This document shows, one piece after another, positions 12,902-40,020 of a DNA stretch of 64,000 nucleotides. Under the pieces are notes generated by a model. The model was not told the origin of the DNA and ran no database searches. It was given only the letters and a program-made list of their open reading frames with translations. Location: assembly GCF_000150275.1 (NCBI RefSeq), contig NW_002060948.1, forward strand, positions 953,983-1,017,982, written 5' to 3'. The stretch is from Trichoplax adhaerens (lineage: Eukaryota > Animalia > Placozoa). The translations under genes and the position numbers were made by a program. Each line of letters starts with the position of its first letter. Positions within the stretch are counted from its first letter, which is position 1.

Positions 12902-14450
12902 AAACTACCCTGAAAGTCTGTAACTGTCATACTCGTATGTACCTGTTCAACGACAGCAACAAATTTATTTAATTAATTCGAATTAGGTAAACCCACACAC
13001 AATGCTGTGAGAACAAGAGCCCTGATATAATATATTACAGCGAATTTTTTTATTGCTAATTCTCTTTAGCTCTGATTCTACAGTGTAGCTGCTATATGAA
13101 TAAATCCTCTTCTCTTTTATAGTATAATAAAGGATAATAAAGGGCGTTAGAAACGAAAGCTTTGTCGTACCATACCAACTTTCACAAATTTATCGTGAAT
13201 GAGTGCTCTAGATTTCTATTCTTAAACGGTTGCTGTATTCACGGTTGTGGCTCATAACAATTAACGGTATATTAAATTGTAAATACATAACCAAGTCATT
13301 GCAATAATTTACAGCTTAAGTCGCCATGCGGAAAGTTTTCTTGACTCTCTTATAGGTAATTACGATATTATTTACATGTTTGGCCAAGTGCCCCTTCACT
13401 TTTCTCTTTGAAAGTACTATAAGTATTTTACTTTTCGGACCTTCTTAAGTAGAACTGTGTACGCGTATCAAGAAATAGTAATGACGATTATCAGTAATAT
13501 TCAAAAGAAGTTACAAGATGGTTTTGAGAGTATATACGACAGGCAAAAAATTGAGATTTGGTGTTGACAATTGGTCATGCCGACATGGGTAAAAATCCTT
13601 TTCTCAATTACATATTAGGCCATGAAATGCTAAAGAGCGATTTCGGGATTATAGATATTATGGACCCTGCTATTATTCAGATCGGTCATGGAATAGAAAC
13701 TTTATTTGCTAAACCGATTGTAAGTAAGTACTATCCTTGGGTTTTTGCAGATTTATCAAGTTTTCCAGTATACACATCATATGAGAATTCTGTTGTGGCT
13801 GCTATTAGCACTAAATTGGCGGTTCGAAATACCCGTCAGGTTAAGGGTATTGTAATTTTAAAGGAAATCACTAGTTTATGCAGTGGGAAACTATACGAAT
13901 TACATATAGTTCCATAGATCACCCAATAGATGCAAGGGAAAACCGTTTTCCCCCGTTTAGGTTACTTAATTAGCGAAGTTAATCTGTTTACAATTGTTGC
14001 CGTAAACTAGTTAAAATGAGTAGATCTTGTGAGGTTGTATATTGTCATATACAATACAGTACGAGTATACATCGTGTATATATACACGTTGTCATAAATA
14101 ACACGCGTAATTAAATAAGATTTATTCATTATGTTTATATTCTAACGTGGCATGATCGAATTGTAATCATACCAGGAACTACCGTACACAAAAATGAGAA
14201 GTGCAATCCAATTGGTTAGTTTCCTGCTGTTGTTAATTGTATATTTGCATTCTATATTGTTATTCGATATGACAAACACGGAAGTTTGCTGAGCCGCACC
14301 TAAGTTTCAGAAATTTACTTTCTATTGCTATTTTGAATTACAATTTTAATCTAATACTGCATCATGATATAACATATTATTATTCCATACAGTTCCATCC
14401 CTATTTTGAATTACAATTTTAATCTAATACTGCATCATGACGTAACATAG
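12902..14450 (+). repeat. Inverted segmental duplication, arm 1 (partner 17698-19389)
   Basis: Reverse complement matches 17698-19389 almost base for base, e.g. aaactaccctgaaagtctgtaactgtcat vs atgacagttacagactttcagggtagttt. ORFs 13558+ and 18010- differ at only about 4 residues. Confidence 0.92.
13481..13917 (+). pseudogene. Decayed B-like GTPase paralog (N-terminal domain only)
   Basis: ATG at 13481 gives MTIISNIQKKLQDGFE, homologous to the B N-terminus, then a frameshift. The P-loop has decayed to GHADMGKNP and G3 to DLSS. YPWVF and LAVRN.RQVK are retained. Confidence 0.85.
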
Positions 14451-14480
14451 TTCATTATTCCATATAGTTCGATCGCTATT
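14329..14480 (+). repeat. Short tandem duplication (about 72-bp unit) just upstream of gene A1
   Basis: ctattttgaattacaattttaatctaatactgcatcatga occurs at about 14329 and 14401. Confidence 0.85.
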
Positions 14481-14544
14481 TTTTTAAAATCTTAGGTGAG
14501 ACTTAGTGAAAGGAATATTTCACCAAACGAAAGGAAAGATCGCA

Positions 14545-17076
14545 ATGATCCAGATTAGTATCAGTGAAATTCAAGCTAAATTAATAGAAGGCTATGGACT
14601 AATAAAAGATGCAAAGGGTAAAGATTTAGTACTGGTGATCGGTAATACCGGTGTGGGTAAAAGCACCTTTCTGAATTATATGCTAGGGTACAAAATGTAC
14701 CAAAATGAAGAATCTGATACGGTGGAGACGGTAGAGAGAGAGTGTCCCGCACATATTGGGCATAATATGCATTCACAAACTTTGTATACACATCCGATTA
14801 CAGATAAAAATTATCCTTGGGTTTTTACCGACTGTCCGGGATTTCTGGATAATAGAATGACCAATGATACGATTGTGACTTCCATTAGCATGGAATTAAC
14901 TATTCGCATTGCAAAACAAGTCAAGGGGATTGTTATACTGATGGATGCGACTGAGTTTTTAAGTAGTAGATTGACTGCTTTGGGTCCGTTGATGAAGATA
15001 TTGATTAAATTATTTCGAGATCCAGTTGAAATGTTAAAGTATTCTGTAATTGGTGTGACAAAACTAGATCAAATAAAGGGAGGAAAAACGAGGGCTAAGA
15101 AAATAACGTTACAAGGTTTGAATAAAATTAAAGAAGAATGTCGTAGAAGAATAAAAACTCTTGAGACAGAGAAGAGAGAAAGAGATGGAACAGATTTGAT
15201 TATCAGTGAATATAAAGTGATGGAAGAGTTTACTAGTGCAGTACTTGGTCGTAAAGATGATATCATGTTTATTGATATTCTTGATGATGGTGATTCAAAA
15301 CAGCTCGTAACCGATCGTATTTGTGCCATTAGATCGAGAACTGAAGCTCAAACTGATCAGTTACCACATGATACTTCTCCACCTCCAATATCAACATCTA
15401 CTAGTAATGCTCAACAAGATGCACTGCCGTTACCGCTAATTACGATCGCAGACTTCAATTTTGAAGATTATGATATCAATAGAACAAGCTTTAATAAAGC
15501 AATTTACGATTTGGCTGGTGAAGGTAATCAGCTAATCGGTGCAATTACAGGAGTTACAGATCAGCTTAAACGTGCGATTGATTTGTGGAATGATAACAAA
15601 AAGAGAATGACGTCGATGAAAAGATTGAGATCGGAGTTGGACAGTTATGTTTCTGCTTCTGAAGTCCCAACAAAATTAATAAACACTTGGTCAGAAATGC
15701 TTGAAGAAAATGAACAATCTATCCAGTCTGAAAAAAGAAAGATGCAGTCTGTTAATGACCAGTTAAAAAAATTTAAACAAGAATTGAATGAAATTAATAC
15801 TGATAAGCCCGTGATATTTGCTGAAAAGAAGTATATCAAAAAGGAGCAATATTGGACCTATCATGAAGTCCTTTTTGATTTTGATACTGAAGATGAACGG
15901 ACACCAATTGTTGATATCGATCAACGAATAGGTAGTGGTCGCTGGTGCAGTACAACAGATGAAAGGCGGAGAGGCCGATATAAAACGTGGTATCAATCTG
16001 GCTGGTGGAAAAGTGGGGATGCTACTATGACGGTTTATATTGCTTCTAAGCATGATACAGGTAATCGTAGACGTATTAAAGATCTTCGAGTAGAAATTAG
16101 TCGATGCAAAGAGTCTTTCGACGAGTTAAATGATAACGTGCTTGAGCTTAAGAAATCTAAGGAACGCATTTCATCCAATATAACATCCGTGAAAAATGTA
16201 GTCCAGGAAGAAGTAGAGAAAGATCGCACAAATAAACTACGGCAGTGTGATGGAGATATCGAGCAATTGTCTGCGCGGATGGCAGAAAATCGGAGACGTA
16301 TGGAAAAGAGTAAAGCAAAAGGTTTAGAATTACTGGAAAATTTTTACGGTGATTCTGATACTTTGAAAATGCCTGAAAAATTTGAGATTGTGCAAAGTAT
16401 CAACGAGTTGCTACGGTTTCCGAGCACTTTGGTATACAAATTTATTAAGCGCTATAAAACCTTTAAAGCGAACTTTGATGCAACTAGAAGATATTTTCAG
16501 TTAGACTTAAATGAAACGGATTTGAGTCAACTTTCTCAGGATAATACAGCAGATGAGTTAGACGATGGTGCTATTAACAAAAAAGATCCCATAACTGGTA
16601 AATGGATTAGGACACTGGTGGTAACGAAGGCAGGAACAGGATTTGAATTATCTTCATTAATGGAGCAATTTCCTATGAATAGCGTAGGCAGTGTGTTTGA
16701 GTTTACTCATCCAACGACTGGTAAAAAAGAGCGTATTCTTTACGGTGATTGGGCCCAACTGAATGAATCAGCTTCGCCTACATCCACTGAGGAAGAACAG
16801 ATTTCTCAAGTGGATCAAGTGCTTAGTATGTCATCGAATGATCCACAAGAACTCAACAGATTAAAACAAAGCGTAGAGGAAGAGATAGAAATGTTAACGA
16901 AAATTATTCAAGAGCGAGAAGAAGAACTTTTTACGAAGCAACGTCAGCTAGATAAAATCATTGAGCGCCTTAAAAGGTTTACAACAGATGAAACAACAGA
17001 AGATATTAGTTCTATGGAGGATAGTTTTGTCCAACTTGATATTACAGAGGTTTCTTCTGTTCCTACTGGTGTCTAA
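14545..17076 (+). CDS. Intronless GTPase / coiled-coil / U-box-like protein, subfamily A, copy A1
   Basis: Uninterrupted ORF; the first ATG (MIQISI) is at 14545 and aligns with the paralog starts. G1 GNTGVGKST, G2 SQT, G3 DCPG, G4 TKLD; heptad-rich segments; KDPITGKWIRTLVVTKAGTGFE; acidic tail SSMEDSFVQL. Confidence 0.9.
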   Translation: MIQISISEIQAKLIEGYGLIKDAKGKDLVLVIGNTGVGKSTFLNYMLGYKMYQNEESDTVETVERECPAHIGHNMHSQTLYTHPITDKNYPWVFTDCPGFLDNRMTNDTIVTSISMELTIRIAKQVKGIVILMDATEFLSSRLTALGPLMKILIKLFRDPVEMLKYSVIGVTKLDQIKGGKTRAKKITLQGLNKIKEECRRRIKTLETEKRERDGTDLIISEYKVMEEFTSAVLGRKDDIMFIDILDDGDSKQLVTDRICAIRSRTEAQTDQLPHDTSPPPISTSTSNAQQDALPLPLITIADFNFEDYDINRTSFNKAIYDLAGEGNQLIGAITGVTDQLKRAIDLWNDNKKRMTSMKRLRSELDSYVSASEVPTKLINTWSEMLEENEQSIQSEKRKMQSVNDQLKKFKQELNEINTDKPVIFAEKKYIKKEQYWTYHEVLFDFDTEDERTPIVDIDQRIGSGRWCSTTDERRRGRYKTWYQSGWWKSGDATMTVYIASKHDTGNRRRIKDLRVEISRCKESFDELNDNVLELKKSKERISSNITSVKNVVQEEVEKDRTNKLRQCDGDIEQLSARMAENRRRMEKSKAKGLELLENFYGDSDTLKMPEKFEIVQSINELLRFPSTLVYKFIKRYKTFKANFDATRRYFQLDLNETDLSQLSQDNTADELDDGAINKKDPITGKWIRTLVVTKAGTGFELSSLMEQFPMNSVGSVFEFTHPTTGKKERILYGDWAQLNESASPTSTEEEQISQVDQVLSMSSNDPQELNRLKQSVEEEIEMLTKIIQEREEELFTKQRQLDKIIERLKRFTTDETTEDISSMEDSFVQLDITEVSSVPTGV

Positions 17077-18009
17077 ACTCTCTGAATAGTAAATAATCTT
17101 AAGGATGAGAGTAAGTGCCGAACTTGTGTATTTCTAGATAAATTGGGAGTGAGTATCCCTAAATCATTGCTCTTGTTCAGAAAAGCTACACGTTGCAGTG
17201 GTCTATTATGTACTGTAAGTAAGAATACAGTAACCTGTTGTACTGCACCTAATGTGTCGTGATAAGATAAGGTAATGAATTACTAAGATAAAGGCATAAG
17301 ACGGTATTATAGCTATGCCATTTAAACGCAGTAAATCCTAAATAAAAAGTGATTTCTAGTAAGCCTACTAGGTGAAGTGTGTCAAAGTCCCTCGTGCAAA
17401 CGTTAACAGCTAAACGTGGAAACATAACGTGGTCTACAGGTTACGTATTTTTAGTAAGTCTATACTAATAGTATTGTATAATACAGTTTTATATGTAGCA
17501 TATTATCTTATGGTGCATTATGAATAGACTGCAAAAGAAATTGTTGGCGAATGCTACGAAGAATAGTGACTATACAGACAGCAGGAGCTATTAGTGCTTT
17601 GGAGTAATAAAGTTCCCTATTTCTATAATAAAAAGGGTGTTTGTATTTCCTGTGAGAACTCTTTTAGAGATCCTAGTATTATCATATGAAATAGTGAGCT
17701 ATGTTACGTCATGATACAGTATTAGATTAAAATTGTAATTCGAAATAGCGATAGAAAGTAAATTTCTGAAACTTAAGTGCGGCTCAGCAAACTTCCGTGT
17801 TTGTCATATCGAATAACAAGATAGAATGTAAATATACAATTAACAACAGCAGGAAACTAATGTATACTCGTACTGTACTGTATATACAACCTCACAAGAT
17901 CTACTCATTTTAACTAGTTTACGGCAACAATTGTAAACAGATTAACTTCGCTAATTAAGTGACCTAAACGGGGGAAAAAAACGGTTTTCCCTTGCATCTA
18001 TTGGGTGAT

Positions 18010-18446
18010 CTATGGAACTATATGTAATTCGTATAGTTTCCCACTGCATAAACTAGTGATTTCCATTAAAATTACAATACCCTTAACCTGACGGGTATTT
18101 CGAACCGCCAATTTAGTGCTAATAGCAGCCACAACAGAATTCTCATATGATGTGTATACTGGAAAACTTGATAAATCTGCAAAAACCCAAGGATAGTACT
18201 TACTTACAATCGGTTTAGCAAATAAAGTTTCTATTCCATGACCGATCTGAATAGTAGCAGGGCCCATAATATCTATAATCCCGAAATCGCTCTTTAGCAT
18301 TTCATGGCCTAACATGTAATTGAGAAAAGGATTTTTACCCATGTCGGCATGACCAATTGTCAACACCAAATCTTAATCTTTTGCCTGTCGTATATACTCT
18401 CAAAACCATCTTGTAACTTCTTTTGAATATTACTGATAATCGTCAT
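18010..18446 (-). pseudogene. Inverted copy of the decayed B-like GTPase relic
   Basis: Near-identical to 13481-13917, with the same frameshift and degenerate P-loop. Confidence 0.85.
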
Positions 18447-18763
18447 TACTATTTCTTGATACGCGTACACAGTTCTACTTAAGAAGGTCCGAAAAGTAAA
18501 ATACTTACAGTACTTTCAAAGAGAAAAGTGAAGGGGCACTTGGCCAAACATGTAAATAATATCGTAATTACCTATAAGAGAGTCAAGAAAACTTTCCGTA
18601 TGGCGACTTAAGCTGTAAATTATTGCAATGACTTGGTTATGTATTTACAATTTAATATACCGTTAATTGTTATGAGCCACAACCGTGAATACAGCAACCG
18701 TTTAAGAATAGAAATCTAGAGCACTCATTCACGATAAATTTGTGAAAGTTGGTATGGTACGAC

Positions 18764-19122
18764 TGTCACGTTCTGTAATAGTTACATAATTAGTATGTTA
18801 CCTTCTTTCTATATATGGTTAAATATCACGATGTTATCACGTCAGGCGTATATAGATGTAGTTATGGTACTATATTAAGGTTATCTATATATGTATTCTC
18901 ATGTTGCCATACTTGGCATGATAGTCTATTTGTAATGACTAAACTAGGGAAACCTTTCTGTTAGTGATGATCTTGTGATCTACGTCAGTAGACCAAAGGT
19001 CACAATAAAGAAAGTATATAAACTCTTCATTTTAACAATAAAGTTAGTTCTTCAACTTAATTACTGGGTCTCCTTGCTGAGTGCAGATCTAGTACTTGTT
19101 ACAAAATTTGGAAGTTGTAACA
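18764..19122 (+). mobile_element. Solo LTR, 359 bp, TSD ACGAC
   Basis: Begins TGTCAC and ends TGTAACA, flanked by ACGAC at 18759-18763 and 19123-19127. The duplicated arm has a single GTCGT (the empty site) at about 13164-13168. Internal AATAAA motifs at about 19004 and 19037. Confidence 0.85.
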
Positions 19123-20770
19123 ACGACAAAGCTGACGTTTCTAACGCCCTTTATTATCCTTTATTATACTATAAAAGAGAAGAAGATTTATTCATATGGC
19201 AGCTATACTGTAGAATCAGGGCTGAAGAGAATTAGCAATAAAAAAATTCGCTGTAATATATTATATCAGGGCTCTTGTTCTCACAGCATTGTGTGTGGGT
19301 TTACCTAATTCGAATTAATTAAATAAATTTGTTGCTGTCGTTGAACAGGTACATACGAGCATGACAGTTACAGACTTTCAGGGTAGTTTAGGCATATAAG
19401 GCACAGAGTATTATTATGAATAGTTGAAAATAGGAAATTAGCCAAATCAGGTGAAAGTACGTAAAAATTGGAAAGATTTTACACTATGTTAAGCTTAAGT
19501 CAAGTCAATGTTGACTTAAAGAGGTAAATAACATATTTAAAAGTTTACAAATGAAATTATACCATCAAATTTTTTCTCACAAGATTTTTATTAGAAATTC
19601 AACTGTGAACAACTACGATAATTTAACAATAATCAAATAATGCTGTAGTCGCACATAGATTAATATTATAAGGCTGATAAATGATACCAATTATAAATAG
19701 GAAATAATGCGAGAATAACTACTACGTTAAATAAGTAATACACTGGTAGAATATCTTCCAGAAATTGATAAGGTTAATAAATAGGTTGCTTACCGAAAAT
19801 ACGCGTATCTAATAAGCATCTCCTTTTTATACGCACAATACTAGATCAATAATGATACCGACCGCCTAATGCTATCAGAGCTGATATCGAATTCATTGTA
19901 GCGGTATAACTATGATATGATATGGTTTACAGTAGCCATTGTGGGTTAATTGTTAGAGGTGCAGTAACTCCTTTTAGAAAGTAAAAGTGAAGTCGATGTT
20001 GTAGCTTATTTTGTAGTAATCACTTACCTTTTAGTTAAAATTATGTACTTATCATTTAATAGGATTCTAGCATTATTTGCCATTAAAACCTTATAATGAG
20101 TTCGACTGAAATTTACTCTATTGTGGACCAGTGGGGGCTAATATACCTATCTATTCGTATAAATTACTTGCACTAAGGAAAAGAATATGAATAGTGGGTA
20201 CTTATATAAAAAATTCTACTATCCCTATTATAACCTCTTTTTTCAGATATCATTAGTAATAAAAATCGACTAAATTTTAACAGAATTTGAGTACCGTAAT
20301 GAACTAGTGTTATTATGACAATAATTGTTCATTATAATTGGGAACCAACGGCAACAAAGTTTTGTATCGATATGTTATAGTACTGGCAGCCAAATTGACA
20401 ATATTTAAATGTTAACATCAATGACCCGTATCTTAAGAATTTATTACCATCGTTATTATCTTTGCCCTAATCTTCATCTTTACATCAAATATCCGTAACA
20501 ATTTACTAATTTAAGAACCGTAATGAATTACTAAAATTATTAATATCTACTAGTAAACCTGCCGTTTAAATGTAGTATACAGTACTATTGCAAATTACCC
20601 TGCGAATGATATGCTGTATATGGCTATTATCATATGGATTACTAGATGTTAATTGAGTCATTTTTTACTTATTTCTCGAAAAATTAAACAACAAATTCGA
20701 CATTTCCTGAATGCCAAGCAAGTCTATCAAATAGTAGAAAAATACCTCTAAGAATTAATATATGCTTATT

Positions 20771-21149
20771 NNNNNNNNNNNNNNNNNNNNNNNNNNNNNN
20801 NNNNNNNNNNNNNNNNNNNNNNNNNNNNNNNNNNNNNNNNNNNNNNNNNNNNNNNNNNNNNNNNNNNNNNNNNNNNNNNNNNNNNNNNNNNNNNNNNNNN
20901 NNNNNNNNNNNNNNNNNNNNNNNNNNNNNNNNNNNNNNNNNNNNNNNNNNNNNNNNNNNNNNNNNNNNNNNNNNNNNNNNNNNNNNNNNNNNNNNNNNNN
21001 NNNNNNNNNNNNNNNNNNNNNNNNNNNNNNNNNNNNNNNNNNNNNNNNNNNNNNNNNNNNNNNNNNNNNNNNNNNNNNNNNNNNNNNNNNNNNNNNNNNN
21101 NNNNNNNNNNNNNNNNNNNNNNNNNNNNNNNNNNNNNNNNNNNNNNNNN
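20771..21149. other. Assembly gap
   Basis: Run of N. Confidence 1.
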
Positions 21150-23099
21150 ACGGATCGTAGCATTTTATAAAAACCTGTACTAAAGGAGAGGGAAAGTCTA
21201 ATAACTCAGCGACTTCTTTAATAACTTGAAATTTCACAGGTACTCTAGCGTTATCAGGACTACCTTCGAAGAACGATTTTAACAATTGTGTACCTTTACT
21301 TTTACTTTCTTTTATTAAATTTTGATTTTCTTTAATTCTATTAGAAAGTCGATTAATTTCTTGATCACACTCTGTAATCTTCATTTCCTGATCTTTCGCC
21401 GCCTTAAGTTTCCCATCTCGTATAGATTTAACACTCTGAATCAAGATTTGGTTCGCTTCTTTAAGCTCATTTAAGCTTGCCCGTAATTCTGTTTCTTGAT
21501 TCTGCAGAGATTCTATCTCCTTGTTAATCTCTTTAATCCGTAGTTGATTACCTGTATCTTGCTTGGTTTTAATATAAGCATCTACTTTAGCATAAGCTTC
21601 AGTGAACCATTGAGAAGCATATATTGTTTTATAATAGCCCTTTTTACGTTGATCGACGGTATCGTACCAATCCCCATTTGCTTGATCTTTTTCAATAACC
21701 ATTGGAATCGATTCACTATCAGTTTTAGCCTCAAAGTTTAGTTTATTAAACCAACCTCTCCAAAAAGACCAGTCTTTAGATAGCTGCTCTGAACGAAATA
21801 GTTTAAGTTCATCCGTGTCGATTTTGGCTAACTCTCTATCTAAGGTAACTATACGTGTCTTAATAGTCCGCTTCTCTTCTGATTGCGAATTAATTGTAGT
21901 CCTATTTCGAGCGATGAGTGTCTCTGAGTTTTCTATAGAGCCAGTTGAATCTCCAGAATCATAAAATAAGCGTTGAAGATTTGATTTAAGTTCATTTAGT
22001 GTCATAATTCTAGTCTCACTTTCTTGGCAAGTGTTAATAGCACTCTTAAGTTGATTTGATTGTGTCTTGATAGCTTCTATTAGTTCGTTACCATCATGTG
22101 CGCGATCATAAATAGCCTTATTAAAAAGTATTCTTTGCTCACTGTATGTTTGAAAGTTAAAATCCTTCACAGTAAGACGTTTAACTTTCTCTTGCTTATC
22201 TTTATCATGATCAGAGCTCAAGGGTCCGAAAGACGAGGGAAAAGAACGCACAGCAGAGACTATTTGATTATACAATTTTTTCGATTTATGTGGCCTAATT
22301 CCTTTAATCAGTTCGATAACTCTTTCTCTGGACTGGCCTTCATCTAAGGGTTTAACAAATACTATATCATCTTGCTTTTGAAGTATAGCAGCAACAAAAG
22401 CCTTAATAAATGCAAAATCTTCCGGTGTCGGGGCAGATGCTGAATGTAAATCATCAGCTAAAGGAGATTTACTTCTTTCATACCTATTTTTAAGTATTTC
22501 TAGATTTCCATCACAATTCTTTTCGATTTTTTTAAAGCTTGCAAAATTCTTTGCTTTGTAGTCTCTTCTGTCAGTCCTAGAGAATCTACTTTTGTTATAG
22601 CCACGATGGAATAATTCGCCATATCCATTGGGCTCTTAAAGAGCGAAATTAGTGTCTTCACTAATTGACTTAACTCATTTAGTCTTGCAGAGAGTAAAGT
22701 ATGGACTTCTATTAAAATCACAACAGCCTTAACCTGACGAGCATTTCGAACCGCCAATTCAGTACTAATAGAACTTACGACAGCATCACTTGATATTCTA
22801 TTATCTTGAAATCCGGGACAATCTGTATAAACCCAAGGATAGATCTCGCTGACAAATGGCGTAGCGTATAAAGTTTCTGACTCCATTTCATGGCCGATCT
22901 TAAAGGTGGCAGGCTGCACCGTATCTATATTTCCAGTATTTTGGTCCTGACACATTTTATGCTCTAGCATGTAGTTCAGAAAAGTACTTTTGCCAACGCC
23001 AGTATTACCAATAGCTAACACTAAATCTTTACCTTCGCCCTTCCGAGTATGTTCAAAACCATTTTCTAACTTCTTTAGAATCTCGTTGATGCTCGTCAT
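21150..23099 (-). pseudogene. Copy B2 of the subfamily-B GTPase, with a 1-nt frameshift and its 3' end in the gap
   Basis: ORFs 22500-23099 and 20755-22275 are near-identical to 29646-32168. Near 22535, caagctttaaaaaaatcg replaces caaggttttaaaaaaatcg (-1 nt). This sits beside a homopolymer, so it could be a sequencing error. Confidence 0.75.
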
Positions 23100-27345: not shown

Positions 27346-27538
27346 ACGAAGTATAAACGAGAACGAGTAGATTTATCAAGGCAAGACAACGTTACTTGCG
27401 CGATTATTCTATATTCAACCGTTAAGTAATCATTAAATTGAAGTATTGCCATTAAGGGGACTTATCGCATCGGAGCCAGTAAATCACTTTTTCTTAGCCT
27501 TTTCTAAGAAAGTATTCTATTTTATCAAGAAACAAGTT

Positions 27539-28236: not shown

Positions 28237-28624
28237 AAAAGTGTTGAATCTCCCCGATATTTTTATATTATGATTGTAACGAGATCAAGAATCTGGGATT
28301 TTGAGCTTTCCTTTCCTTTAGTCTACTTTTATTTGGAAGCCCAAGCCAAGCGCGATATCATACACACGTTAACGAGACATAAGAACTGTGACAACAAATC
28401 AGCTCTAGTACGAACATAACTTGAATACCATATCCAAATACACGTGAACATTTGTAGCATGTGATCTTAATCTAGTACAGTACTGTACTGTATATAGTAG
28501 AAGCATGGAAAACCAAAATAAATTTAGGAATGCTATAATTGCATGGCGAATAAATAATGACCAAATTCTAAGTAAAAGATTGTCTTCTGTTCTACTGCTG
28601 TATTGCATGAAGATATGACCAAAT

Positions 28625-29363: not shown

Positions 29364-29645
29364 TACATGTTTTAGCGCATTTTGCATAATTTATTGATTT
29401 TGTTGTTTGAATCGATCAGATGCGCCATAGGGCATCACCGATAAACGCCCCAAGCCAATAATCAATTCTATTTGAACCAATCAGATGGTTAAATATGTAT
29501 TTCATCCGTATATTTTAGTAATTTTTTAAAGAAAAATAAACTCAGTAGATTTAAAGAAAATAATCTCGGTAGCAAAGAAAAATTGCTACCGAGAAATAAA
29601 TGTCAGTAGAAAGTGAAGTAAACTGTAAAAGGTTTCGCATAAAAG

Positions 29646-32168
29646 ATGACGAGCATCAACGAGATTCTAAAGAAGTTAGAAAATGGTTTTGAACATACTC
29701 GGAAGGGCGAAGGTAAAGATTTAGTGTTAGCTATTGGTAATACTGGCGTTGGCAAAAGTACTTTTCTGAACTACATGCTAAAGCATAAAATGTGTCAGGA
29801 CCAAAATACTGGAAATATAGATACGGTGCAGCCTGCCACCTTTAAGATCGGCCATGAAATGGAGTCAGAAACTTTATACGCTACGCCATTTGTCAGCGAG
29901 ATCTATCCTTGGGTTTATACAGATTGTCCCGGATTTCAAGATAATAGAATATCAAGTGATGCTGTCGTAAGTTCTATTAGTACTGAATTGGCGGTTCGAA
30001 ATGCTCGTCAGGTTAAGGCTGTTGTGATTTTAATAGAAGTCCATACTTTACTCTCTGCAAGACTAAATGAGTTAAGTCAATTAATGAAGACACTAATTTC
30101 GCTCTTTAAGAGCCCAATCGATATGGCCAATTATTCCATCGTGGCTATAACAAAAGTAGATTCTCTAGGACTGACAGAAGAGACTACAAAGCAAAGAATG
30201 TTGCAAGGTTTTAAAAAAATCGAAAGGAATTGTGATGGAAATCTAGAAATGCTTAAAAATAAGTATGAAAGAAGTAAATCTCCTTTAGCTGATGATTTAC
30301 ATTCAGCATCTGCCCCGACACCGGAAGATTTTGCATTTATTAAGGCTTTTGTTGCTGCTATACTTCAAAAGCAAGATGATATAGTATTTGTTAAACCCTT
30401 AGATGAAGGCCAGTCCAGAGAAAGAGTTATCGAACTGATTAAAGGAATTAGGCCACATAAATCGAAAAAATTGTATAATCAAATAGTCTCTGCTGTGCGT
30501 TCTTTTCCCTCGTCTTTCGGACCCTTGAGCTCTGATCATGATAAAGATAAGCAAGAGAAAGTTAAACGTCTTACTGTGAAGGATTTTAACTTTCAAACAT
30601 ACAGTGAGCAAAGAATACTTTTTAATAAGGCTATTTATGATCGCGCACATGATGGTAACGAACTAATAGAAGCTATCAAGACACAATCAAATCAACTTAA
30701 GAGTGCTATTAACACTTGCCAAGAAAGTGAGACTAGAATTATGACACTAAATGAACTTAAATCAAATCTTCAACGCTTATTTTATGATTCTGGAGATTCA
30801 ACTGGCTCTATAGAAAACTCAGAGACACTCATCGCTCGAAATAGGACTACAATTAATTCGCAATCAGAAGAGAAGCGGACTATTAAGACACGTATAGTTA
30901 CCTTAGATAGAGAGTTAGCCAAAATCGACACGGATGAACTTAAACTATTTCGTTCTGAGCATCTATCTAAAGACTGGTCTTTTTGGAGAGGTTGGTTTTA
31001 TATATTAGACTTTGAGGCTAAAACTGATAGTGAATCGATTCCAATGGTTATTGAAAAAGATCAAGCAAATGGGGGTTGGTACGATACCGTCGATCAACGT
31101 AAAAAAGGCTATTATAAAACAAAATATGTTTCTCAATGGTTCACTGAAGCTTATGCTAAAGTAGATGCTTATATTAAAACCAAGCAAGATACAGGTAATC
31201 AACTACGGATTAAAGAGATTAGCAAGGAGATAGAATCTCTGCAAAATCGAAAAACAGAATTACGGGCAAGCTTAAATGAGCTTAAAGAAGCGAACAAAAT
31301 CTTGATTCAGAATATTGAATCTATACGAGATGGGAAACTTAAGGCGGCGAAAGATCAGGAAATGAAGATTACAGAGTGTGATCAAGAAATTAATCGACTT
31401 TCTAATAGAATTAAAGAAAATCAAAATTTAATAAAAGAAAGTAAAAGTAAAGGTACACAATTGTTAAAATCGTTCTTCGAAGGTAGTCCTGATAACGCTA
31501 GAGTACCTGTGAAATTTCAAGTTATTAAAGAAGTCGCTGAGTTATTAGACTTTCCCTCTCCTTTAGTACAGGTTTTTATAAAATGCTACGATCCGTTTAT
31601 AAAACAGCAGCTATCTGATATTCGTAAACTTTTTGAGATTAATCCTGCTACGATTAATTTTAGCACATTACCTACTCAAGCGGTCCCTGAATGTGATGAG
31701 GACATTGGTCCTAAAGATCCTATAACGAGTCAACGAATTATAACTCCGGTAGTAACTGATGCTGGCACCCTATTTGATTTACAATCATTGCGTAAATGCT
31801 TTCCTGAACATCCTACTAAAGAAGATGTATATGAATTCTCCCACTATGACGGACGAGTAGAGCATATTCACTATTTATGCTGGAAACAAATCGGTAATCT
31901 TAGTGAATATTTGTATCAGAGAAGAAGACAGACATCTCCAGAAAAACGTCACTCATTTATTAACATACCGAGTGATTTAAATGAGTTACTCAGAATACAA
32001 TACGATCTTCAGCAAGAAATAGCTTGTATAGAAAAGGAATTTAAGGCGGCGATGGATAAAAAGCAAATAGAATTAGAGAAGATTAATACACAGATTCAAT
32101 CGCTTCATATATCAGAATCATCGGATAAAGATACTTTCAGTGATGAAGAATATGAGATTGTATCTTAA
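29646..32168 (+). CDS. Intronless GTPase / coiled-coil / U-box-like protein, subfamily B, copy B1 (840 aa)
   Basis: G1 GNTGVGKST, SET, DCPG, TKVD; Trp-rich insert DWSFWRGWF...GGWYD...YVSQWF; PKDPITSQRIITPVVTDAGTLFDLQSL; tail SDEEYEIVS*. Confidence 0.92.
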   Translation: MTSINEILKKLENGFEHTRKGEGKDLVLAIGNTGVGKSTFLNYMLKHKMCQDQNTGNIDTVQPATFKIGHEMESETLYATPFVSEIYPWVYTDCPGFQDNRISSDAVVSSISTELAVRNARQVKAVVILIEVHTLLSARLNELSQLMKTLISLFKSPIDMANYSIVAITKVDSLGLTEETTKQRMLQGFKKIERNCDGNLEMLKNKYERSKSPLADDLHSASAPTPEDFAFIKAFVAAILQKQDDIVFVKPLDEGQSRERVIELIKGIRPHKSKKLYNQIVSAVRSFPSSFGPLSSDHDKDKQEKVKRLTVKDFNFQTYSEQRILFNKAIYDRAHDGNELIEAIKTQSNQLKSAINTCQESETRIMTLNELKSNLQRLFYDSGDSTGSIENSETLIARNRTTINSQSEEKRTIKTRIVTLDRELAKIDTDELKLFRSEHLSKDWSFWRGWFYILDFEAKTDSESIPMVIEKDQANGGWYDTVDQRKKGYYKTKYVSQWFTEAYAKVDAYIKTKQDTGNQLRIKEISKEIESLQNRKTELRASLNELKEANKILIQNIESIRDGKLKAAKDQEMKITECDQEINRLSNRIKENQNLIKESKSKGTQLLKSFFEGSPDNARVPVKFQVIKEVAELLDFPSPLVQVFIKCYDPFIKQQLSDIRKLFEINPATINFSTLPTQAVPECDEDIGPKDPITSQRIITPVVTDAGTLFDLQSLRKCFPEHPTKEDVYEFSHYDGRVEHIHYLCWKQIGNLSEYLYQRRRQTSPEKRHSFINIPSDLNELLRIQYDLQQEIACIEKEFKAAMDKKQIELEKINTQIQSLHISESSDKDTFSDEEYEIVS

Positions 32169-34651
32169 AAGTACTTTGTATCTCTTACTCCATGTTCCAC
32201 ATAGTTAGCGATGATTTATTACTATAGTATTAAGCTAGTTGTACCAATGTATGTGTACATGATTTGAGTAATGTTATCATTCCTATTAGAATTCATTGTT
32301 AATTGATAGATATTTGTTAATTCAAATAACTTTACGACATTATTATCTTGTGATGTCTCTTGAATTAATTGCTAAAATTTATAATAAGCATATATTAATT
32401 CTTAGAGGTATTTTTCTACTATTTGATAGACTTGCTTGGCATTCAGGAAATGTCGAATTTGTTGTTTAATTTTTCGAGAAATAAGTAAAAAATGACTCAA
32501 TTAACATCTAGTAATCCATATGATAATAGCCATATACAGCATATCATTCGCAGGGTAATTTGCAATAGTACTGTATACTACATTTAAACGGCAGGTTTAC
32601 TAGTAGATATTAATAATTTTAGTAATTCATTACGGTTCTTAAATTAGTAAATTGTTACAGATATTTGATGTAAAGATGAAGATTAGGGCAAAGATAATAA
32701 CGATGGTAATAAATTCTTAAGATACGGGTCATTGATGTTAACATTTAAATATTGTCAATTTGGCTGCCAGTACTATAACATATCGATACAAAACTTTGTT
32801 GCCGTTGGTTCCCAATTATAATGAACAATTATTGTCATAATAACACTAGTTCATTACGGTACTCAAATTCTGTTAAAATTTAGTCGATTTTTATTACTAA
32901 TGACATCTGAAAAAAGAGGTTATAATAGGGATAGTAGAATTTTTTATATAAGTACCTACTATTCATATTCTTTTCCTTAGTGCAAGTAATTTATACGAAT
33001 AGATAGGTATATTAGCCCCCACTGGTCCACAATAGAGTAAATTTCAGTCGAACTCATTATAAGGTTTTAATGGCAAATAATGCTAGAATCCTATTAAATG
33101 ATAAGTACATAATTTTAACTAAAAGGTAAGGTAATTAGGTAAGTGATTACTACAAAATAAGCTACAACATCGACTTCACTTTTACTTTCTAAAAGGAGTT
33201 ACTGCGCCTCTAACAATTAACCCACAATGGCTACTATAAACCATATCATATCATAGTTATACCGCTACAATGAATTCGATATCAGCTCTGATAGCATTAG
33301 GCGATCGGTATCATTATTGATCTAGTATTGTGCGTATAAAAAGGAGATGCTTATTAGATACGCGTATTTTCGGTAAGCAACCTATTTATTAACCTTATCA
33401 ATTTCTGGAAGATATTCTACCAGTGTATTACTTATTTAACGTAGTAGTTATTCTCGCATTATTTCCTATTTATAATTGGTATCATTTATCAGCCTTATAA
33501 TATTAATCTATGTGCGACTACAGCATTATTTGATTATTGTTAAATTATCGTAGTTGTTCACAGTTGAATTTCTAATAAAAATCTTGTGAGAAAAAATTTG
33601 ATGGTATAATTTCATTTGTAAACTTTTAAATACTTAACATAGTGTAAAATCTTTCCAATTTTTACATACTTTCACCTGATTTGGCTAATTTCCTATTTTC
33701 AACTGTTCATAATAATACTCTGCGCCCTGTTACACGGAAGTATGTAGTGTTAATCCTACAATAAACTGTTTTCGATCTGGTTTCTATCCTACAGTACCTC
33801 ATAAATAATTATGTATCTTTGAGCGGTAAGTTTTCAATTAAATAACATGTTAGGAATTAGCAACATGAATTATCATTTCATAATAAGATGTAATGATTTG
33901 CATGGACAACATATGGTTATACAGTACCGACGTAAATATAAAATCCTAAGGCGATGATTTACAATAAGATGCCGCCCAATATAAGTGCTAGATATCTTTT
34001 GCTATTATACGAATTCCATACGAGTCCAAGAGTACCATATAAACAAAAGTACATTTGTGTAAACTATCTCGAGGGAATATTGCACTAGTTTACATAAAGA
34101 TGCGATTGATATGCCTACTCCAAGTTCATGGTCTGGGTTAAGCTCAAGTAGTTCGTGAGCTAAAATCAATAAGTCTGGAATTTAAGAGATACTCACTGAA
34201 TCTCTTGTGTAAGCTGTCGTACTCGATCTAGGCGCACAATGCTCGTATACTGCATTGAGGATCTCTAATAATGAATTACATATTCGAGCAACTACACTTG
34301 GAAAGATGACCTTCCAGACTATTTCCTTTACACATTTCAGATTGCGACTTTACAACACTAATCAATGCCGTCATCGTGATGTAAAGCCATAAGTAAGTGA
34401 TTAAAATTCTTCTATTGCTTATTTACAATATTGAACCTTATGCTTTGAATCGACCAGTAGTAAACAGCTACATAACGATGTCTCTTGTTTACATTATGAC
34501 CGGATAAGTCATTCTAAAGTTTTCTTTCTAGTTAGTGTCAGGTATTAGCTCTTTATTTAGTTTTTTGCGTTTTCAAAAAAAATTGCTATCGGTCGAGCCA
34601 TAGTTGAAATCCAGTGGAAAGGAATTCTAATAAGTAAAAGGAGGGATCACC

Positions 34652-37231
34652 ATGCCTGCGATAGAAATCAGTGAGATACAAGCCAAATTGGCAGCTGGTT
34701 TTAAACTAACACAACAAGCCAATGGCAAAGACTTAGTTCTGGTGATCGGTAATACTGGTGTGGGTAAAAGCACCTTTCTTAACTATATGTTGGGGCATAC
34801 AATGCGTGAAAATGAAGAATTAGATGTGATAGAGGCCGTAGAGACGTCTGCCTTACACATTGGCCATGAGATGCGTTCAGAGACTTTATACGCACGGCCG
34901 GTTGTGAGTCAAGACTATCCTTGGGTTTTTACCGACTGTCCGGGATTTTTGGATAACAGAATAACCAATGATACAATTGTGACTTCTATTAGTATGGAAT
35001 TAGCGATTCGTAGTGCAAATCAGGTCAAAGGAATTATTATCTTGATGGATGCAACTGAGTTTTTGAATAGTAGATTGAGTACTTTAAGTCCATTGATGAA
35101 GATATTGATTAAATTGTTTAGAGATCCAGTTGAAATGTTAAAGTATTCTGTAATTGGTGTGACCAAAACGGATAAGATGAAAGGTGGAAAAACAAAATCT
35201 AAAAGAATGATGGTGCAAGCTTTTGGTAAAATCAAAGAAGAATGTCAGAGAAAAATACAGACTCTTCAGTCAGAATTTGAAAGACAAGGTCATAAAGCTT
35301 TCTTTTCTATAGGGAGTGAGAATAAAGAGGAAAGCGATCTGAGAGAATTAACTGTTAGCGACTATAAAGTGATGACAGAATATATCAGTGCAGTACTTAG
35401 ACGACAAGATGAGATCGTTTTTATTGATGTTCTTGATGACGGCGATTCAAAGCAACACATTATTGATCGTATTCATGCAATTAGGCCGAGAACTGAAGCT
35501 CAAACGGGCCACTCACTACAGGATACTCTTCCAACTGCGTTATCAGCATCCGCTGAATACTTGCAGCTAGATACTTTATCGCTACGGCCTATTACAGTAG
35601 CAGATTTTAATTTTGAGCATTATGATGTAAATAGAAGACACTTTAATCTTGCTATTTATGATTTTGCTAGTGAAGGTAGCCGATTAATTGGTGCGATCAT
35701 AGGGGTAGCAAATCAACTGAAACGCATGATCGATATGTGGCAAGACAACAAAATTAGAATGGCGGCATTGAATAAACTAAAATCAGAGTTACAAAATTAT
35801 ATCTCTGTTTCTGAAGGCCCAAGGAAATTATTGAATACCTGGTCAGAAATGCTTTCAGAAAATGCTCAATCCATTCAATCAGCGCAAGAAGATATTCATT
35901 CGATTAAAAATCAGATAAAAAAGCATGAACAAGAATTGAATGAAGTTAATACTGATAAACCCATAAAATTTGCGGAAAAAATATATCTCAAAAAAGAGTG
36001 GTATTGGACCCACCATAAGGAACTCTTCAAGTTTGATACTGAAAATGAATCAGTACCAATAGTCGATGTAGACAAACACATAGGTAATGGTTGCTGGTGT
36101 TATACGAAAGATGAAAGAAAAAAAGGCCGATATAAATCGTTATATCTATCAGACTGGCTGGCGTACGGGGATGCTAGAATAACTGTTTACATTGCTTCTA
36201 AGGATGAAGAAGGCAACCGTAAGCTCGTTAGAGATCTTCAGACAGAAATTCATCGATCTGGAGAACTCTTGGCTGAGATACAAGCTAATCTATCGTTGCT
36301 TGAAGAATCTAAAGATCGTTTATTATCCAGTATAAAATCGATGGAAAATGTAGTTCAGGAAGAAGTAGAAAAGGATCGAGCTGATAAAATGTTGCAATGT
36401 GATGGAGAAATTGAGCAGTTATCTGCTCGTATGACAGAAAATCGAAAGCAGATAAAAATGACTAAAGCAAAGGCTTTAAAATTATTGAAAAAATTTTGTG
36501 ATGATTCTGAATCTTTAAATATCCATAAAAAATTTAAAATTGTCAAAAGTATTAATGAGTTACTACAACTACCAGGCACTTTAGTGGATAAATTCATTGA
36601 ACGTTATGAGGGGTTTAAAGCTGAGTTTAAAACCATACAAAAATGTTTTCGGATAGACTTAGATAAGGAAGATTTGAGCCAATTTTCGCAAGATAATTCA
36701 ACGGATCAATTAGATAGAGCTATAAATAGAAAAGATCCAATAAGTGGTAAATGGATTAGGACGCTGGTAGTAACAAAAGCAGGAACAGGATTTGAATTAT
36801 CTTCCTTAGTGGAGCAATTTCCTGAGAATTGTATAGGGAGCGTTTTTGAATTTATTCATCCTACTGGTAAAAAAGAGCGCATTTTTTATGGTGATTGGAC
36901 TATCATGTCTGAATGGCCCGCACTTACAGGGCAAGAAGAGAGATTTTCTCAAGCCGATCAAGTACTTGGTATGTCATCGAATGATCCACTGGAATTGATC
37001 AAAGTGAAAAAGAGTGTAGAGGAAGAGATAGAGTTGTTAGTGCAAGGTATTCAAGAGCAAGAAGAGGAACTCTTTGCAAAGCGAGATCAGTTAAAAAAAA
37101 TCACCGAACGTCTTAAAGGGCTTGGCTTTTTACTTTCAGTAGATGAAACCGAAGAGACTAGTTCCATTGATAGTAGTTTTATCCAAATAGATGCTATAGA
37201 TACTTCCTTTATTCCTGATGTTAGCGCATAA
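34652..37231 (+). CDS. Intronless GTPase / coiled-coil / U-box-like protein, subfamily A, divergent copy A3 (859 aa)
   Basis: Collinear with A1: GNTGVGKST, DCPG, TKTD; KDPISGKWIRTLVVTKAGTGFE; tail IDSSFIQID. Confidence 0.92.
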   Translation: MPAIEISEIQAKLAAGFKLTQQANGKDLVLVIGNTGVGKSTFLNYMLGHTMRENEELDVIEAVETSALHIGHEMRSETLYARPVVSQDYPWVFTDCPGFLDNRITNDTIVTSISMELAIRSANQVKGIIILMDATEFLNSRLSTLSPLMKILIKLFRDPVEMLKYSVIGVTKTDKMKGGKTKSKRMMVQAFGKIKEECQRKIQTLQSEFERQGHKAFFSIGSENKEESDLRELTVSDYKVMTEYISAVLRRQDEIVFIDVLDDGDSKQHIIDRIHAIRPRTEAQTGHSLQDTLPTALSASAEYLQLDTLSLRPITVADFNFEHYDVNRRHFNLAIYDFASEGSRLIGAIIGVANQLKRMIDMWQDNKIRMAALNKLKSELQNYISVSEGPRKLLNTWSEMLSENAQSIQSAQEDIHSIKNQIKKHEQELNEVNTDKPIKFAEKIYLKKEWYWTHHKELFKFDTENESVPIVDVDKHIGNGCWCYTKDERKKGRYKSLYLSDWLAYGDARITVYIASKDEEGNRKLVRDLQTEIHRSGELLAEIQANLSLLEESKDRLLSSIKSMENVVQEEVEKDRADKMLQCDGEIEQLSARMTENRKQIKMTKAKALKLLKKFCDDSESLNIHKKFKIVKSINELLQLPGTLVDKFIERYEGFKAEFKTIQKCFRIDLDKEDLSQFSQDNSTDQLDRAINRKDPISGKWIRTLVVTKAGTGFELSSLVEQFPENCIGSVFEFIHPTGKKERIFYGDWTIMSEWPALTGQEERFSQADQVLGMSSNDPLELIKVKKSVEEEIELLVQGIQEQEEELFAKRDQLKKITERLKGLGFLLSVDETEETSSIDSSFIQIDAIDTSFIPDVSA

Positions 37232-38031
37232 GCGTATTTTCTTAGAATAATTAGTGCAAAATCTTCGCTAGACTAACACATAGAATATTCAAGAATCTTA
37301 CTCGAATCTTTATTGATAATAAAGTTCTTTGGAGAATATTAGCAATTCCCACTATTGAACACTCGTTTATACTATCTATCGAGACTCGCTTACCCCCTGC
37401 ACGCCGACTAATGTTAGTTGTTATTTACTTGCGCGTGTATTCAAGTTCCAATTTATGTCAGCATATAACCATCGGATCGATGTAATTATAGTTCAGTAGT
37501 TGTTGTTGTCGAGTATTGTGGATATAGCTAGCTAGGCATTTGATAAATAAAGAAAGTTACTTTACACGATTACCGACTGGAGTATATTACAGATTTACAC
37601 TATCGACTACTAGTAATTTTAGTAGTCCATACTTTATACTGTCTTGTGTGGCATGATTGATCTCGCTAATTTATATATAGCAATTTGATTCAAGCGTACT
37701 ACCAAACTAATAAAAAATCACTTTGGCGATGTTAGTTTGATTGACCAATATTGATTGATTTTGAATTATTATTAATATTTATCCTGATATGCTGGTACTC
37801 TACGGTAGAGATTATCCAAACTTTTACTTGAGGGAATTAGGTTAATTGTTTTACCATTATAGTGATAATAAATAAATATAATTAAGGATGTCTCGGAAGA
37901 GCGCAGCACATAAATGAATATATTAGCGTATGTAACTAAAATATCGATAGTGTAGTAAAAGACCAGGGAGATATTTCTTTTCACTTCGAGGATTTGTATA
38001 TATAATCATTAGTAATCAATACAATATCGCA

Positions 38032-40020
38032 TTGGTTATAGGTAATACGGGCGTTGGTAAAGGCACTTTCGTCAATTATATGCTTAGGCATGAAATGTTC
38101 AGAGATGCAGAATCTGCAGCTGTAGATACCTATGGTCCTGCTACCTTTACGATCGGTTATGAAATGCGGCCAGAAATCTTATATGCGAAGCCATTTCTAA
38201 GCGAGAAATATCCCTTGGTTTTCAAAGATTTCCCCAGATTTCAAGATAATAGATTATCAAGCGATGCAGTTGTGACTTCTATTAGCACTGAATTGGCGGT
38301 TCGAAATGCTCATCAGGTTAAAAGTAATTTTAATGGAAATCAATAGTTTGCTCGGTACGAGACTACCTGACTTAAATCAAATGGCGAAGACACTGATTAC
38401 GCTTCAAGAGGCCAGTCGATATGAGAATGAGTAACTACTGTAATCTTTATATGGGTATTAGTTGCTTTCTAGTCGATTTCTTCAATAATTCATGCTTTAT
38501 CATAAGAATCTATGTAGCCTACATCTTGCATTCTCGATCAGATCAACAGAAGAGAAGACTAATTTCTTACCCTATTGCAATACTTTAAATACAGTACGGT
38601 GCTCGTACTACGAGCATATTGCAAATTCTTAATTTCTCATGTGTCTGCAACGTCAATGAAAATACACATACTATATGACGAATTATAATTATTAAATCAT
38701 AGTATGAATGTTTGGCCATTTCAGTCAGTCCACATAGAGACTAAGCAATTTGTTTTAACTGGCAGCAATCAATGCCTGTTGTCGCACGATACCAACCACA
38801 AAGATTTACTTCTTGTACTTGACTATTGAATGTGATCAAGCAGTGAATTAATTTCCTACTTGCTGATCACATTACTATCCTATTGTGGAAAAACGCGAAT
38901 CCGGAAGCTCATTGACCTAAATTTTAATCTTTAAACTGAAAAAAAACGCGAAGTCCGGAAATGATTAAAGATTTTAACTTTCAAGCTTATTGCGAGCAGA
39001 GAATATCATTTAATATAGCTATTTATAACTATGCGCATAATGGCAATGTACTAATAGGAGATTAAAGAGCAGTCTAAGCAACTAAAAAATGCTATTAAAA
39101 CATATCAGGAGAGTAAGAATCGGTCCGAGGCACCAAAAACTTTGAAATCAGACCTTGAGAATCACCTTTCTGGTTCAGAAGATTCAACTAATTCAATAAA
39201 AACATCGGAAGAAATCCCAACTCAAAATAATCAATTAAAGAACATGAGGTAAAGCTATTGAGAAGGAAAAAACTAAATTACGTAGAGAAGTAACTGGTAT
39301 TGATACAGATGACCTCATGCTATTTCGTTCAGCTTCTCTTTCTAAAAATTGGACTTTATGGCATAGTTGTTTTTTACGATAGAGTTTAAGGCTGATACCA
39401 ACGCTAAGTGGATATCAGTCAGTGTACATACTGAGGAGAAAATGGACAGTGGCACAATACAGTAGATTGATCGAAAGGTTATTATAAAACAAAATTCCGT
39501 TCTAAATGGTATGTTAAAGCTTATGCGAAAATGGAAGCTTATATCAAAACCAGACACGATGCAGGTAATCAACTTCGGATCCAAAAGATTATCATGAAGA
39601 TAAAATCACTTAAGAGTAAAAAAAAATAAATTAGAAACAAGTTTAGAAAAGCTTAAAAAGGAAAACAAAGTCCTAAATCAAAATACGTATTCAATCTTTA
39701 CATGATGGAAATCTTAATGCAGAAAATAATCGAGAAGATTGCGAAATGTGATCAAGAAATTAAACAGCTTTCTGGTAGAATTGAATCAAGCCGAAGTTTG
39801 ATTGAAAAGAATAAGTAGGTACACGACTATTGGATTCACTTTTTTTAAAGTGTTCCCGATAAGGCCACAGTACCGTAGAAATTCCGGCTTATGAGAGAAA
39901 TTGCGGAGTTGTTAGACTTTCCATCCCATTTTAATACAAGTCTTCGTGAAGCCAGATAATCATTTTATAAAAGATCAGCTTCCTTTTCTTCGCTAGCTTT
40001 TTGAGATAAATCCTGATAAG
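38032..40020 (+). pseudogene. Heavily decayed near-full-length B-like paralog
   Basis: G-domain fragment at 38032-38420 (IGNTGVGKGT, FQDNR.SSDAVV). Frameshifted remnants at 38960-40020: KDFNFQAYCEQRISFN, IDTD, KCDQEIKQLSGRIE, AELLDFPS, FEINP. Confidence 0.85.

Follow-up and report, generated by a model that had tools for sequence, protein, structure and literature searches.

The 64,000-nucleotide window of the Trichoplax adhaerens genome analyzed here (contig NW_002060948.1, positions 953,983 to 1,017,982 of the forward strand; coordinates below are those of the window) contains, between 13.4 and 40 kb, a cluster of three intact, intronless open reading frames (ORFs), designated genes A, B and C, together with six broken copies. 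The encoded proteins have a common architecture: a GIMAP/septin-like GTPase domain, a four-helix stalk carrying a six-stranded beta head, a diverged U-box, a coiled coil, and an acidic tail with a motif resembling the LC3-interacting region (LIR). This placozoan-specific family probably traces back to one horizontal transfer, that of an effector-type gene of bacteria, which was kept, duplicated and expressed. The initial annotation, made from the letters of the window alone, implied an animal origin. This part of it is not supported, since the closest relatives are effector-like genes of bacteria, located on mobile elements, and no other animal homologue appears in the protein searches described below. 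The intact genes are as follows.

14545–17076, plus strand: gene A, intact ORF of 843 residues (856 residues from an upstream GTG).
29646–32168, plus strand: gene B, intact ORF of 840 residues.
34652–37231, plus strand: gene C, intact ORF of 859 residues, transcribed and unspliced.

Proteins A, B and C are 36–63% identical to each other in pairwise comparisons. The initial annotation had reported intact paralogs starting at 14545, 29646 and 34652, and ORFs are found at those places; the domain order that it had read from them is confirmed in all three proteins. A tblastn search of the window with proteins A, B and C gave exactly six further copies, in agreement with the six broken copies claimed, and the tandem arrangement of intact and broken copies bears out the birth-and-death cluster that had been proposed. 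All ORFs longer than 200 residues in the window are family copies or gap artefacts. The longest other ORF has 167 residues, in line with an intron-rich genome, and among the short exons of the window the intronless A, B and C stand out.

When 5.8 billion proteins were searched by word index, the full-length relatives returned, apart from Trichoplax H1 and H2 entries, were metagenomic and 28–36% identical. The alignments to P0006 and P0008 are collinear and cover 95% of the length at this identity. Searching 1.84 billion representatives with a profile yielded 3997 matches, with 263 cluster representatives at E ≤ 1e-30, and the matches span positions 1–831. A homologue from another animal was found in neither search, nor was the full-length architecture in any other eukaryote.

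The gene neighborhoods of the relatives should be noted. Contigs were inspected for the eight members nearest to Trichoplax, of which seven are in the trees described below; the other, P0023, is too short for them and is the next-ranked profile match. All eight sit among bacterial genes of plasmid, transposon or housekeeping type, with the following neighbors.

Contig 1: relaxase MobA/TraI, ProQ, ParA and PhdYeFM/PIN.
Contig 2: Fic, resolvase, PemK and ankyrin proteins.
Contig 3: the ankyrin-patatin gene only.
Contig 4 (195 kb, chromosomal): O-antigen genes, LapB, rpsA, cmk and FabV.
Contig 5: pyruvate kinase, PGK and GAPDH.
Contig 6: integrase core domain (rve), SEC-C motif protein and HTH regulator (HTH_3).
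Contig 7: IS66 and a group II intron reverse transcriptase.
Contig 8: phage integrase, TIR-NB-ARC and recombinase.

Directly downstream of the GTPase/U-box gene, all eight contigs carry an ankyrin-patatin gene of 966–1456 residues, in some cases with an OTU or RickCE deubiquitinase domain. The positions are as follows.

L014:12573–16508, L016:12658–15558, L018:3393–7337 and L019:12612–16982: ankyrin-patatin gene following the GTPase/U-box gene, bacterial contigs.
L021:3817–8034, L102:4913–8911, L103:4413–8291 and L105:9771–12716: likewise, bacterial contigs.

Judging from this gene order, the pair looks like a conserved two-gene effector module. With the queries used, neither the window nor the Trichoplax assembly yielded an ankyrin-patatin gene, and the animal protein must therefore act without this partner. 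At L105:7297–9758 the bacterial homologue is split into adjacent ORFs of 496 and 331 residues, apparently by a frameshift.

The 195-kb chromosomal contig belongs to an unclassified gammaproteobacterium, whose S1 protein shares no more than 67% identity with the S1 proteins of metagenome-assembled genomes (MAGs). An outgroup member with a canonical U-box also has a bacterial context. Of 401 gammaproteobacterial species genomes, sampled evenly, 13 gave a match, and three of these matches are near full length. A plasmid database gave GTPase-domain matches only, on Megaira and Neochlamydia plasmids, and no relative was confirmed when 185,579 species genomes were scanned for patterns of the family alignment. 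The bacterial carriers are probably host-associated. The contig of the distant member P0009 (L013) has 25% GC and carries a canonical-U-box member beside TIR_2, TPR-NPHP3 and HIG_1_N genes, with no Shine-Dalgarno sequence; this contig may be bacterial or from a protist.

In the phylogenetic trees, the Trichoplax genes are monophyletic (support 99 in the quick tree and 100/100 in the careful tree). They belong to a clade with 100/100 support together with nine other sequences, which are bacterial wherever the context was inspected, suggesting that the Trichoplax genes are nested among bacterial sequences. The direction from bacterium to placozoan is what we infer from this nesting, the lack of introns, the lack of an animal homologue in the searches above, and a box upstream of gene C.

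34639–34644, plus strand: AGGAGG, Shine-Dalgarno-like, 7 nucleotides before the ATG of gene C; weak evidence.

The spacing of this box resembles that of the ribosome-binding sites of the bacterial homologues, and the homologous site in gene A is degenerate.

Several observations limit this explanation. Nesting inside the bacterial subclade is supported only at 86/68, and a constraint that unites the nine bacterial sequences lowers the log-likelihood by 21.9 units (approximately unbiased (AU) test, p = 0.064). The canonical second half of the U-box is lost in the Trichoplax domain. The five MAGs that are nearest, by ribosomal protein S1, to the contig of the member P0024 have no family match. 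Furthermore, the U-box and GIMAP-type domains of bacteria are commonly considered to derive from eukaryotes (PMC7542358, PMC3482391), and a eukaryote-to-bacterium history of the wider family is therefore possible. The same background favors a reverse transfer, in which the architecture would be eukaryotic, from a placozoan ancestor or a protist host, and would have been captured by intracellular bacteria, leaving the Trichoplax genes as a vertical remnant. A sister position of the Trichoplax genes is left open by the AU test, and the uncertain origin of the 25% GC contig of P0009 points the same way. However, diversity is far greater among the bacterial members (263 clusters), which, as sampled, include nested subclades as well as outgroups. 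The genes of Trichoplax lack introns though the genome is intron-rich, the full-length architecture was found in no other eukaryote in the protein searches, and a Shine-Dalgarno-like box precedes gene C. We consider a reverse transfer distinctly improbable.

The Trichoplax genes appear to be functional in the animal. Expression was examined for gene C from assembled contigs, which do not give expression levels or exact transcript ends. Gene C is present in 20 public runs from seven studies, and three declared RNA-seq runs (40–45 million letters each) hold 42–95% of its words. Contigs of two RNA runs and of a third, probable RNA run cover approximately 34511–37531 (up to 37726) with no joints, and none of them lies over 33668–34403. 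The RNA contigs restricted to gene C come from two studies. Contigs from independent runs join gene C to its AT-rich flanks. The coverage indicates an unspliced, monocistronic transcript with short untranslated regions. RNA-seq contigs of two runs also lie over 37828–38631, the GTPase remnant of a degraded copy with a 131-residue open frame, and this remnant may be transcribed.

The substitution pattern argues that the genes are under purifying selection after duplication. Between A and C, the synonymous divergence (dS) is 0.88 and the ratio of nonsynonymous to synonymous divergence (dN/dS) is 0.26, with regional values of 0.17 in the U-box and 0.25 in the GTPase domain. Comparisons of A or C with B give a dN/dS of approximately 0.26–0.30, at saturated dS. 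The recent duplicates are separated by 23 and 27 substitutions (pN/pS 0.74 and 1.1), and each pair has one frameshifted member; the picture is more like relaxed constraint or patchy gene conversion than diversifying selection. For the beta head, positive selection was considered and rejected, since synonymous and nonsynonymous changes both cluster at residues 437–558.

The broken copies are located as follows.

13481–13902, plus strand: GTPase-only fragment in the left arm of an inverted repeat.
18446–18025, minus strand: GTPase-only fragment in the right arm of the inverted repeat.
23099–21151, minus strand: B-like copy (residues 1–650), 95% amino acid identity, running into the gap at 20771–21149.
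24671–26408, plus strand: A-like copy (residues 1–580), 97% amino acid identity, running into the gap at 26409–27345.
27539–28230, plus strand: GTPase-only fragment (residues 1–209) with stops, found by tblastn.
37984–40014, plus strand: degraded copy (pieces of residues 14–667) with multiple stops, found by tblastn.

The B-like copy has a 1-bp deletion at nucleotide 562. The A-like copy has a 2-bp deletion at nucleotides 1469–1470 and is otherwise complete. These frameshifts may be sequencing errors. The two assembly gaps truncate the 3′ parts of exactly these two near-full-length copies. A separate, unplaced contig of approximately 15 kb in the same assembly, C1311, corresponds to 24832–26408 and 27346–28452 at 99.7% identity and fills the gap at 26409–27345 with approximately 1.1 kb, including the remaining part of the A-like ORF, which is free of stops. 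Because C1311 matches both flanks of this gap, continuity across it is supported. In the area of the other gap, C1311 has 99.7% identity to gene B and only 98.1% to the B-like flank; continuity across this gap is plausible. Being partly closer to gene B than to the adjoining B-like copy, C1311 may represent a second haplotype or be chimeric. C1311 matches several parts of the cluster at 98–99.7% identity (loci L004, L005, L007, L010 and L012).

Gene A is bracketed by the inverted repeat, whose main arms (13164–13949 and 17978–18763) are 786 nucleotides long and 99% identical. The repeat region as a whole covers 12902–14465 and 17684–19389, with a GTPase fragment in each arm and gene A in the loop; the structure could be a real palindrome or an assembly artefact. 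The public model for gene A, P0002 (793 residues), begins at an internal Met and omits the P-loop. Another public model, TRIADDRAFT_57164 (629 residues), is built on the B-like copy at 21151–23099 and splices around its frameshift. Outside the cluster, the 167-residue open frame at 48912–49415 matches the metallo-beta-lactamase fold (Lactamase_B_2, E = 7.6e-10) and is probably an exon of an adjoining host gene.

With six of the nine copies broken, and with gaps, a 99% inverted repeat and a redundant contig in the region, the cluster might be taken for non-functional bacterial DNA, whether an insertion in decay or contamination wrongly assembled into the scaffold. This explanation is largely refuted and hardly credible. 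The dN/dS of 0.26 between A and C has been maintained across approximately 0.9 synonymous changes per site, three ORFs of 840–859 residues are still open, and the transcript-like RNA coverage is confined to gene C. Gene B is 99% identical to TrispH2_003250 of Trichoplax sp. H2, which lies on a 628-kb contig of an independent assembly. The window contains no other bacterial genes, and the contigs from independent runs that link the gene to AT-rich flanks likewise oppose contamination.

The domains are described below for protein C, where they are encoded at the following positions.

34652–35491, plus strand: GIMAP/septin-like TRAFAC GTPase domain (residues 1–280), from a 29.9-bit match to MMR_HSR1.
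35597–36451, plus strand: four-helix stalk (residues 316–600), which carries the beta head, from the AlphaFold model.
35960–36196, plus strand: Trp/Tyr/Lys-rich six-stranded beta head (residues 437–515), from the AlphaFold model and family conservation.
36701–36916, plus strand: derived U-box-like domain (residues 684–755), from alignment to the U-boxes of relatives, the model and fold matches.

The GTPase domain gives the sole Pfam match of the Trichoplax proteins, to MMR_HSR1 (29–30 bits in A, B and C against a cut-off of 21.9). The initial annotation of an intact TRAFAC GTPase holds: the G1 motif GNTGVGKST, the switch-I Thr, the G3 motif DCPGF and the G4 motif TK-x-D are intact in all three genes. 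The close relatives show no variation in G1, G3, the switch-I Thr or the Thr of G4, and the full TK-x-D is kept in the Trichoplax copies only. In a comparison of the GTPase-domain profile with the PDB, the best long match is GIMAP7 (E = 1.3e-4, approximately 200 positions), followed more weakly by septins, Toc33 and IRGb10. With Pfam AIG1 (PF04548), protein A scores 16.5 bits, under the cut-off of 27, and B and C have no match.

The stalk and head of protein C (residues 285–600) are predicted by AlphaFold as four long helices with a six-stranded beta domain (predicted local distance difference test score (pLDDT), 86.3; predicted template modeling score, 0.73). Within the beta head, F459, G492, Y498 and A508 are conserved across the wider family. 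The Trp/Tyr-rich segment of approximately 80 residues in the initial annotation is therefore real, but it is a conserved domain and not an insert, because it is conserved throughout the wider family. Foldseek gave no match for stalk plus head at E ≤ 0.001. A wide fold scan gave only helical-bundle look-alikes, with Z scores under the level at which helical-bundle fold matches count as meaningful (approximately 13).

No whole-protein family was found either. PADLOC and NCBIfam contain no family for the GTPase/U-box protein, the PADLOC matches being weak P-loop or coiled-coil ones (E ≥ 1.6e-4), and the ESM Atlas gave generic AIG1/MMR_HSR1 clusters only. As none of Pfam, NCBIfam and PADLOC covers the whole protein, the architecture lies outside named families, as had been remarked from the letters.

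The U-box-like domain is less evident in the Trichoplax proteins themselves, in which Pfam U-box (PF04564) has no match at E ≤ 1. This region of A, B and C aligns column for column to relatives that do match Pfam U-box; the match in P0009 has 48 bits (E = 1.3e-12), and 24 of 54 relatives have the match at the same position. The family profile matches PDB structures of LubX, PUB12, CHIP and UFD2, with LubX the best at E = 6e-14. The core of the structure model of the region has pLDDT above 90. In Foldseek, LubX U-box 2 is the top match (probability 1.0, TM 0.52, best E 7.9e-3), and the matches listed are mostly RING/U-box domains. In an independent fold scan of 48,161 chains, the first 16 rows are RING, U-box or SP-RING domains (Z 5.3–6.4). 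The scores for the fold are middling in both comparisons. In the subclade containing Trichoplax, the second loop and the helix of the U-box are remodeled into beta strands, and the Pro-Ile of the first loop is kept. Taken together, the alignments and the model indicate that the domain is U-box-derived, with a predicted RING/U-box fold without zinc ligands, so the U-box-like motif first read from the letters is now backed by homology and by fold matches. It is flanked by helices, as in dimeric E3s. LubX U-box 2 is reported not to bind E2 (PMC7542358). Since the best structural match is this non-E2-binding U-box, ligase activity is not assured.

After the coiled coil, the acidic tails contain EDSFVQL in A, DEEYEIV in B and DSSFIQI in C at aligned positions.

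17026–17037, plus strand: putative LIR-like core in the tail of A, aligned tail motif.
32151–32162, plus strand: putative LIR-like core in the tail of B, aligned tail motif.
37178–37189, plus strand: putative LIR-like core F-I-Q-I in the acidic tail of C, aligned tail motif.

All three tails fit the LIR definition used here, an aromatic residue (W, F or Y), two residues of any kind and then L, I or V, after acidic or Ser residues in a disordered region; the LIR-like tail assigned earlier to all three paralogs is thus present at the sequence level. In the GTPase/U-box family, 0.017 occurrences of the strict motif are expected per 40 residues; it is found in the last 40 residues of four of the 149 family members, with none among the nearest bacterial relatives. 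A complex prediction of Trichoplax GABARAP (P0169) with residues 805–859 of protein C gave 0.10 against a mark of 0.34, a result that counts neither for nor against binding.

The initial annotation had proposed, by analogy with GBP/IRG, RNF213 and optineurin, an endogenous animal pathway combining sensing, GTP-driven assembly, ubiquitination and ATG8 recruitment in one chain, a module whose origin would be animal or immaterial. The tandem birth-and-death cluster, the homology to GIMAP-like GTPases and U-boxes, and the LIR-like tail of all three paralogs, rare in the family and absent from the nearest bacterial relatives, are consistent with such a module, and intracellular bacteria live in Trichoplax (PMC6784892). 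However, no animal relatives were found in the protein searches, the nearest relatives being bacterial and effector-like, and the analogy is not supported. The U-box is derived and nearest to a non-catalytic one, and the substitutions in the beta head include synonymous ones, with no sign of positive selection. We regard the endogenous module as unlikely.

A related possibility joins the immune function to the bacterial origin. The captured effector would have been turned on bacteria as a one-chain xenophagy receptor controlling the Grellia and Ruthmannia symbionts: the GTPase, stalk and head would recognize a bacterial or vacuolar surface, the U-box-like domain would tag it, and the LIR tail, acquired in the host, would lead it to autophagy. 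Grellia lives in fibre cells and Ruthmannia in ventral epithelial cells. This proposal seems quite unlikely to us.

Under the preferred explanation, a transferred effector-type gene, the bacterial source would have encoded a GIMAP-like GTPase with a helical stalk, a beta head and a U-box, and would have resided on plasmids, transposon-rich islands or chromosomes. After the transfer, the intronless state would have been kept, followed by tandem duplication and purifying selection, with transcription of at least gene C. In the protein, GTP binding may cause the GIMAP-like domain to dimerize or assemble. At the tip of the stalk, the beta head, with its aromatic and basic residues, may bind a membrane or another target. 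The coiled-coil-flanked U-box-like domain may recruit E2~ubiquitin or, like LubX U-box 2, hold a substrate, and the acidic LIR-like tail, present only in the Trichoplax copies when compared with the nearest relatives, may add a link to ATG8. Use by the animal in defence, symbiont control or housekeeping is possible in each case; an immune role and ATG8 binding are speculation.

LubX of Legionella (PDB 4wz2, 4wz3 and 8qhc), a bacterial U-box effector, has a eukaryote-type U-box like the Trichoplax family; unlike the Trichoplax proteins, it is a chain of 215–264 residues in the PDB with two U-boxes and no GTPase, stalk or beta head. GIMAP genes also form clustered, expanding families. The GTPase domains of GIMAP/AIG1 proteins (GIMAP7, PDB 3zjc) share the P-loop and the DxPGF-type G3 of the septin/GIMAP/Toc class with the Trichoplax domain, but their C-terminal architecture is wholly different, and the AIG1 domain is reported to be undetected in Trichoplax (PMC3723955, PMC7053062). 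GBP, IRG, Mx and RNF213 resemble the Trichoplax proteins in the arrangement of a GTPase with a long helical stalk; IRGb10 has a weak match in the P-loop region, and MFN2 is among the stalk-fold matches (Z 8.8). They differ in belonging to another GTPase class, with no significant relation in sequence or fold beyond the generic P-loop, and the Trichoplax family appears to be bacterial in ancestry. In overall arrangement, the stalk and head also recall ClyA-family alpha-pore-forming toxins (SmhA, MakA/B/E, Hbl-B and NheA), long helical bundles with a beta-rich head (Z 10–11 over 190–200 residues). These Z scores are below approximately 13, there is no sequence similarity, and the Trichoplax head has six strands and not a beta tongue.

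Effectors of amoeba and protist endosymbionts (Amoebophilus, Rickettsiales and Chlamydiae) are described as combining GIMAP-type GTPase, U-box, OTU, ankyrin and lipase domains (Zhang et al. 2012, PMC3482391). In the literature searched, the GTPase-stalk-beta head-U-box architecture is not described, nor is its fixed pairing with an ankyrin-patatin gene, nor an animal copy. TRIADDRAFT_57164 and TrispH2_003250 are named in no paper found, U-box, patatin or GTPase effectors go unmentioned in the genome papers on placozoan symbionts, and the 12 published lateral-transfer candidates of T. adhaerens exclude this family (PMC3641634). The Trichoplax genes are probably a bacterial gene family that was acquired horizontally and domesticated, and they represent a new subtype of U-box protein.

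The existing Trichoplax gene models truncate or mis-splice these genes. Bacterium-to-animal transfers that were kept, expanded and expressed are few and mostly concern enzymes. In the Trichoplax case, the protein would be a regulator of effector type, large and multidomain, that joins a GTPase to an E3-like domain, and the recipient is among the earliest-branching animals and lives with intracellular bacteria. On the bacterial side, the family, with at least 263 clusters, points to an unstudied two-component effector module in which, in the subclade nearest to Trichoplax, the GTPase/U-box protein is paired with an ankyrin-patatin phospholipase.

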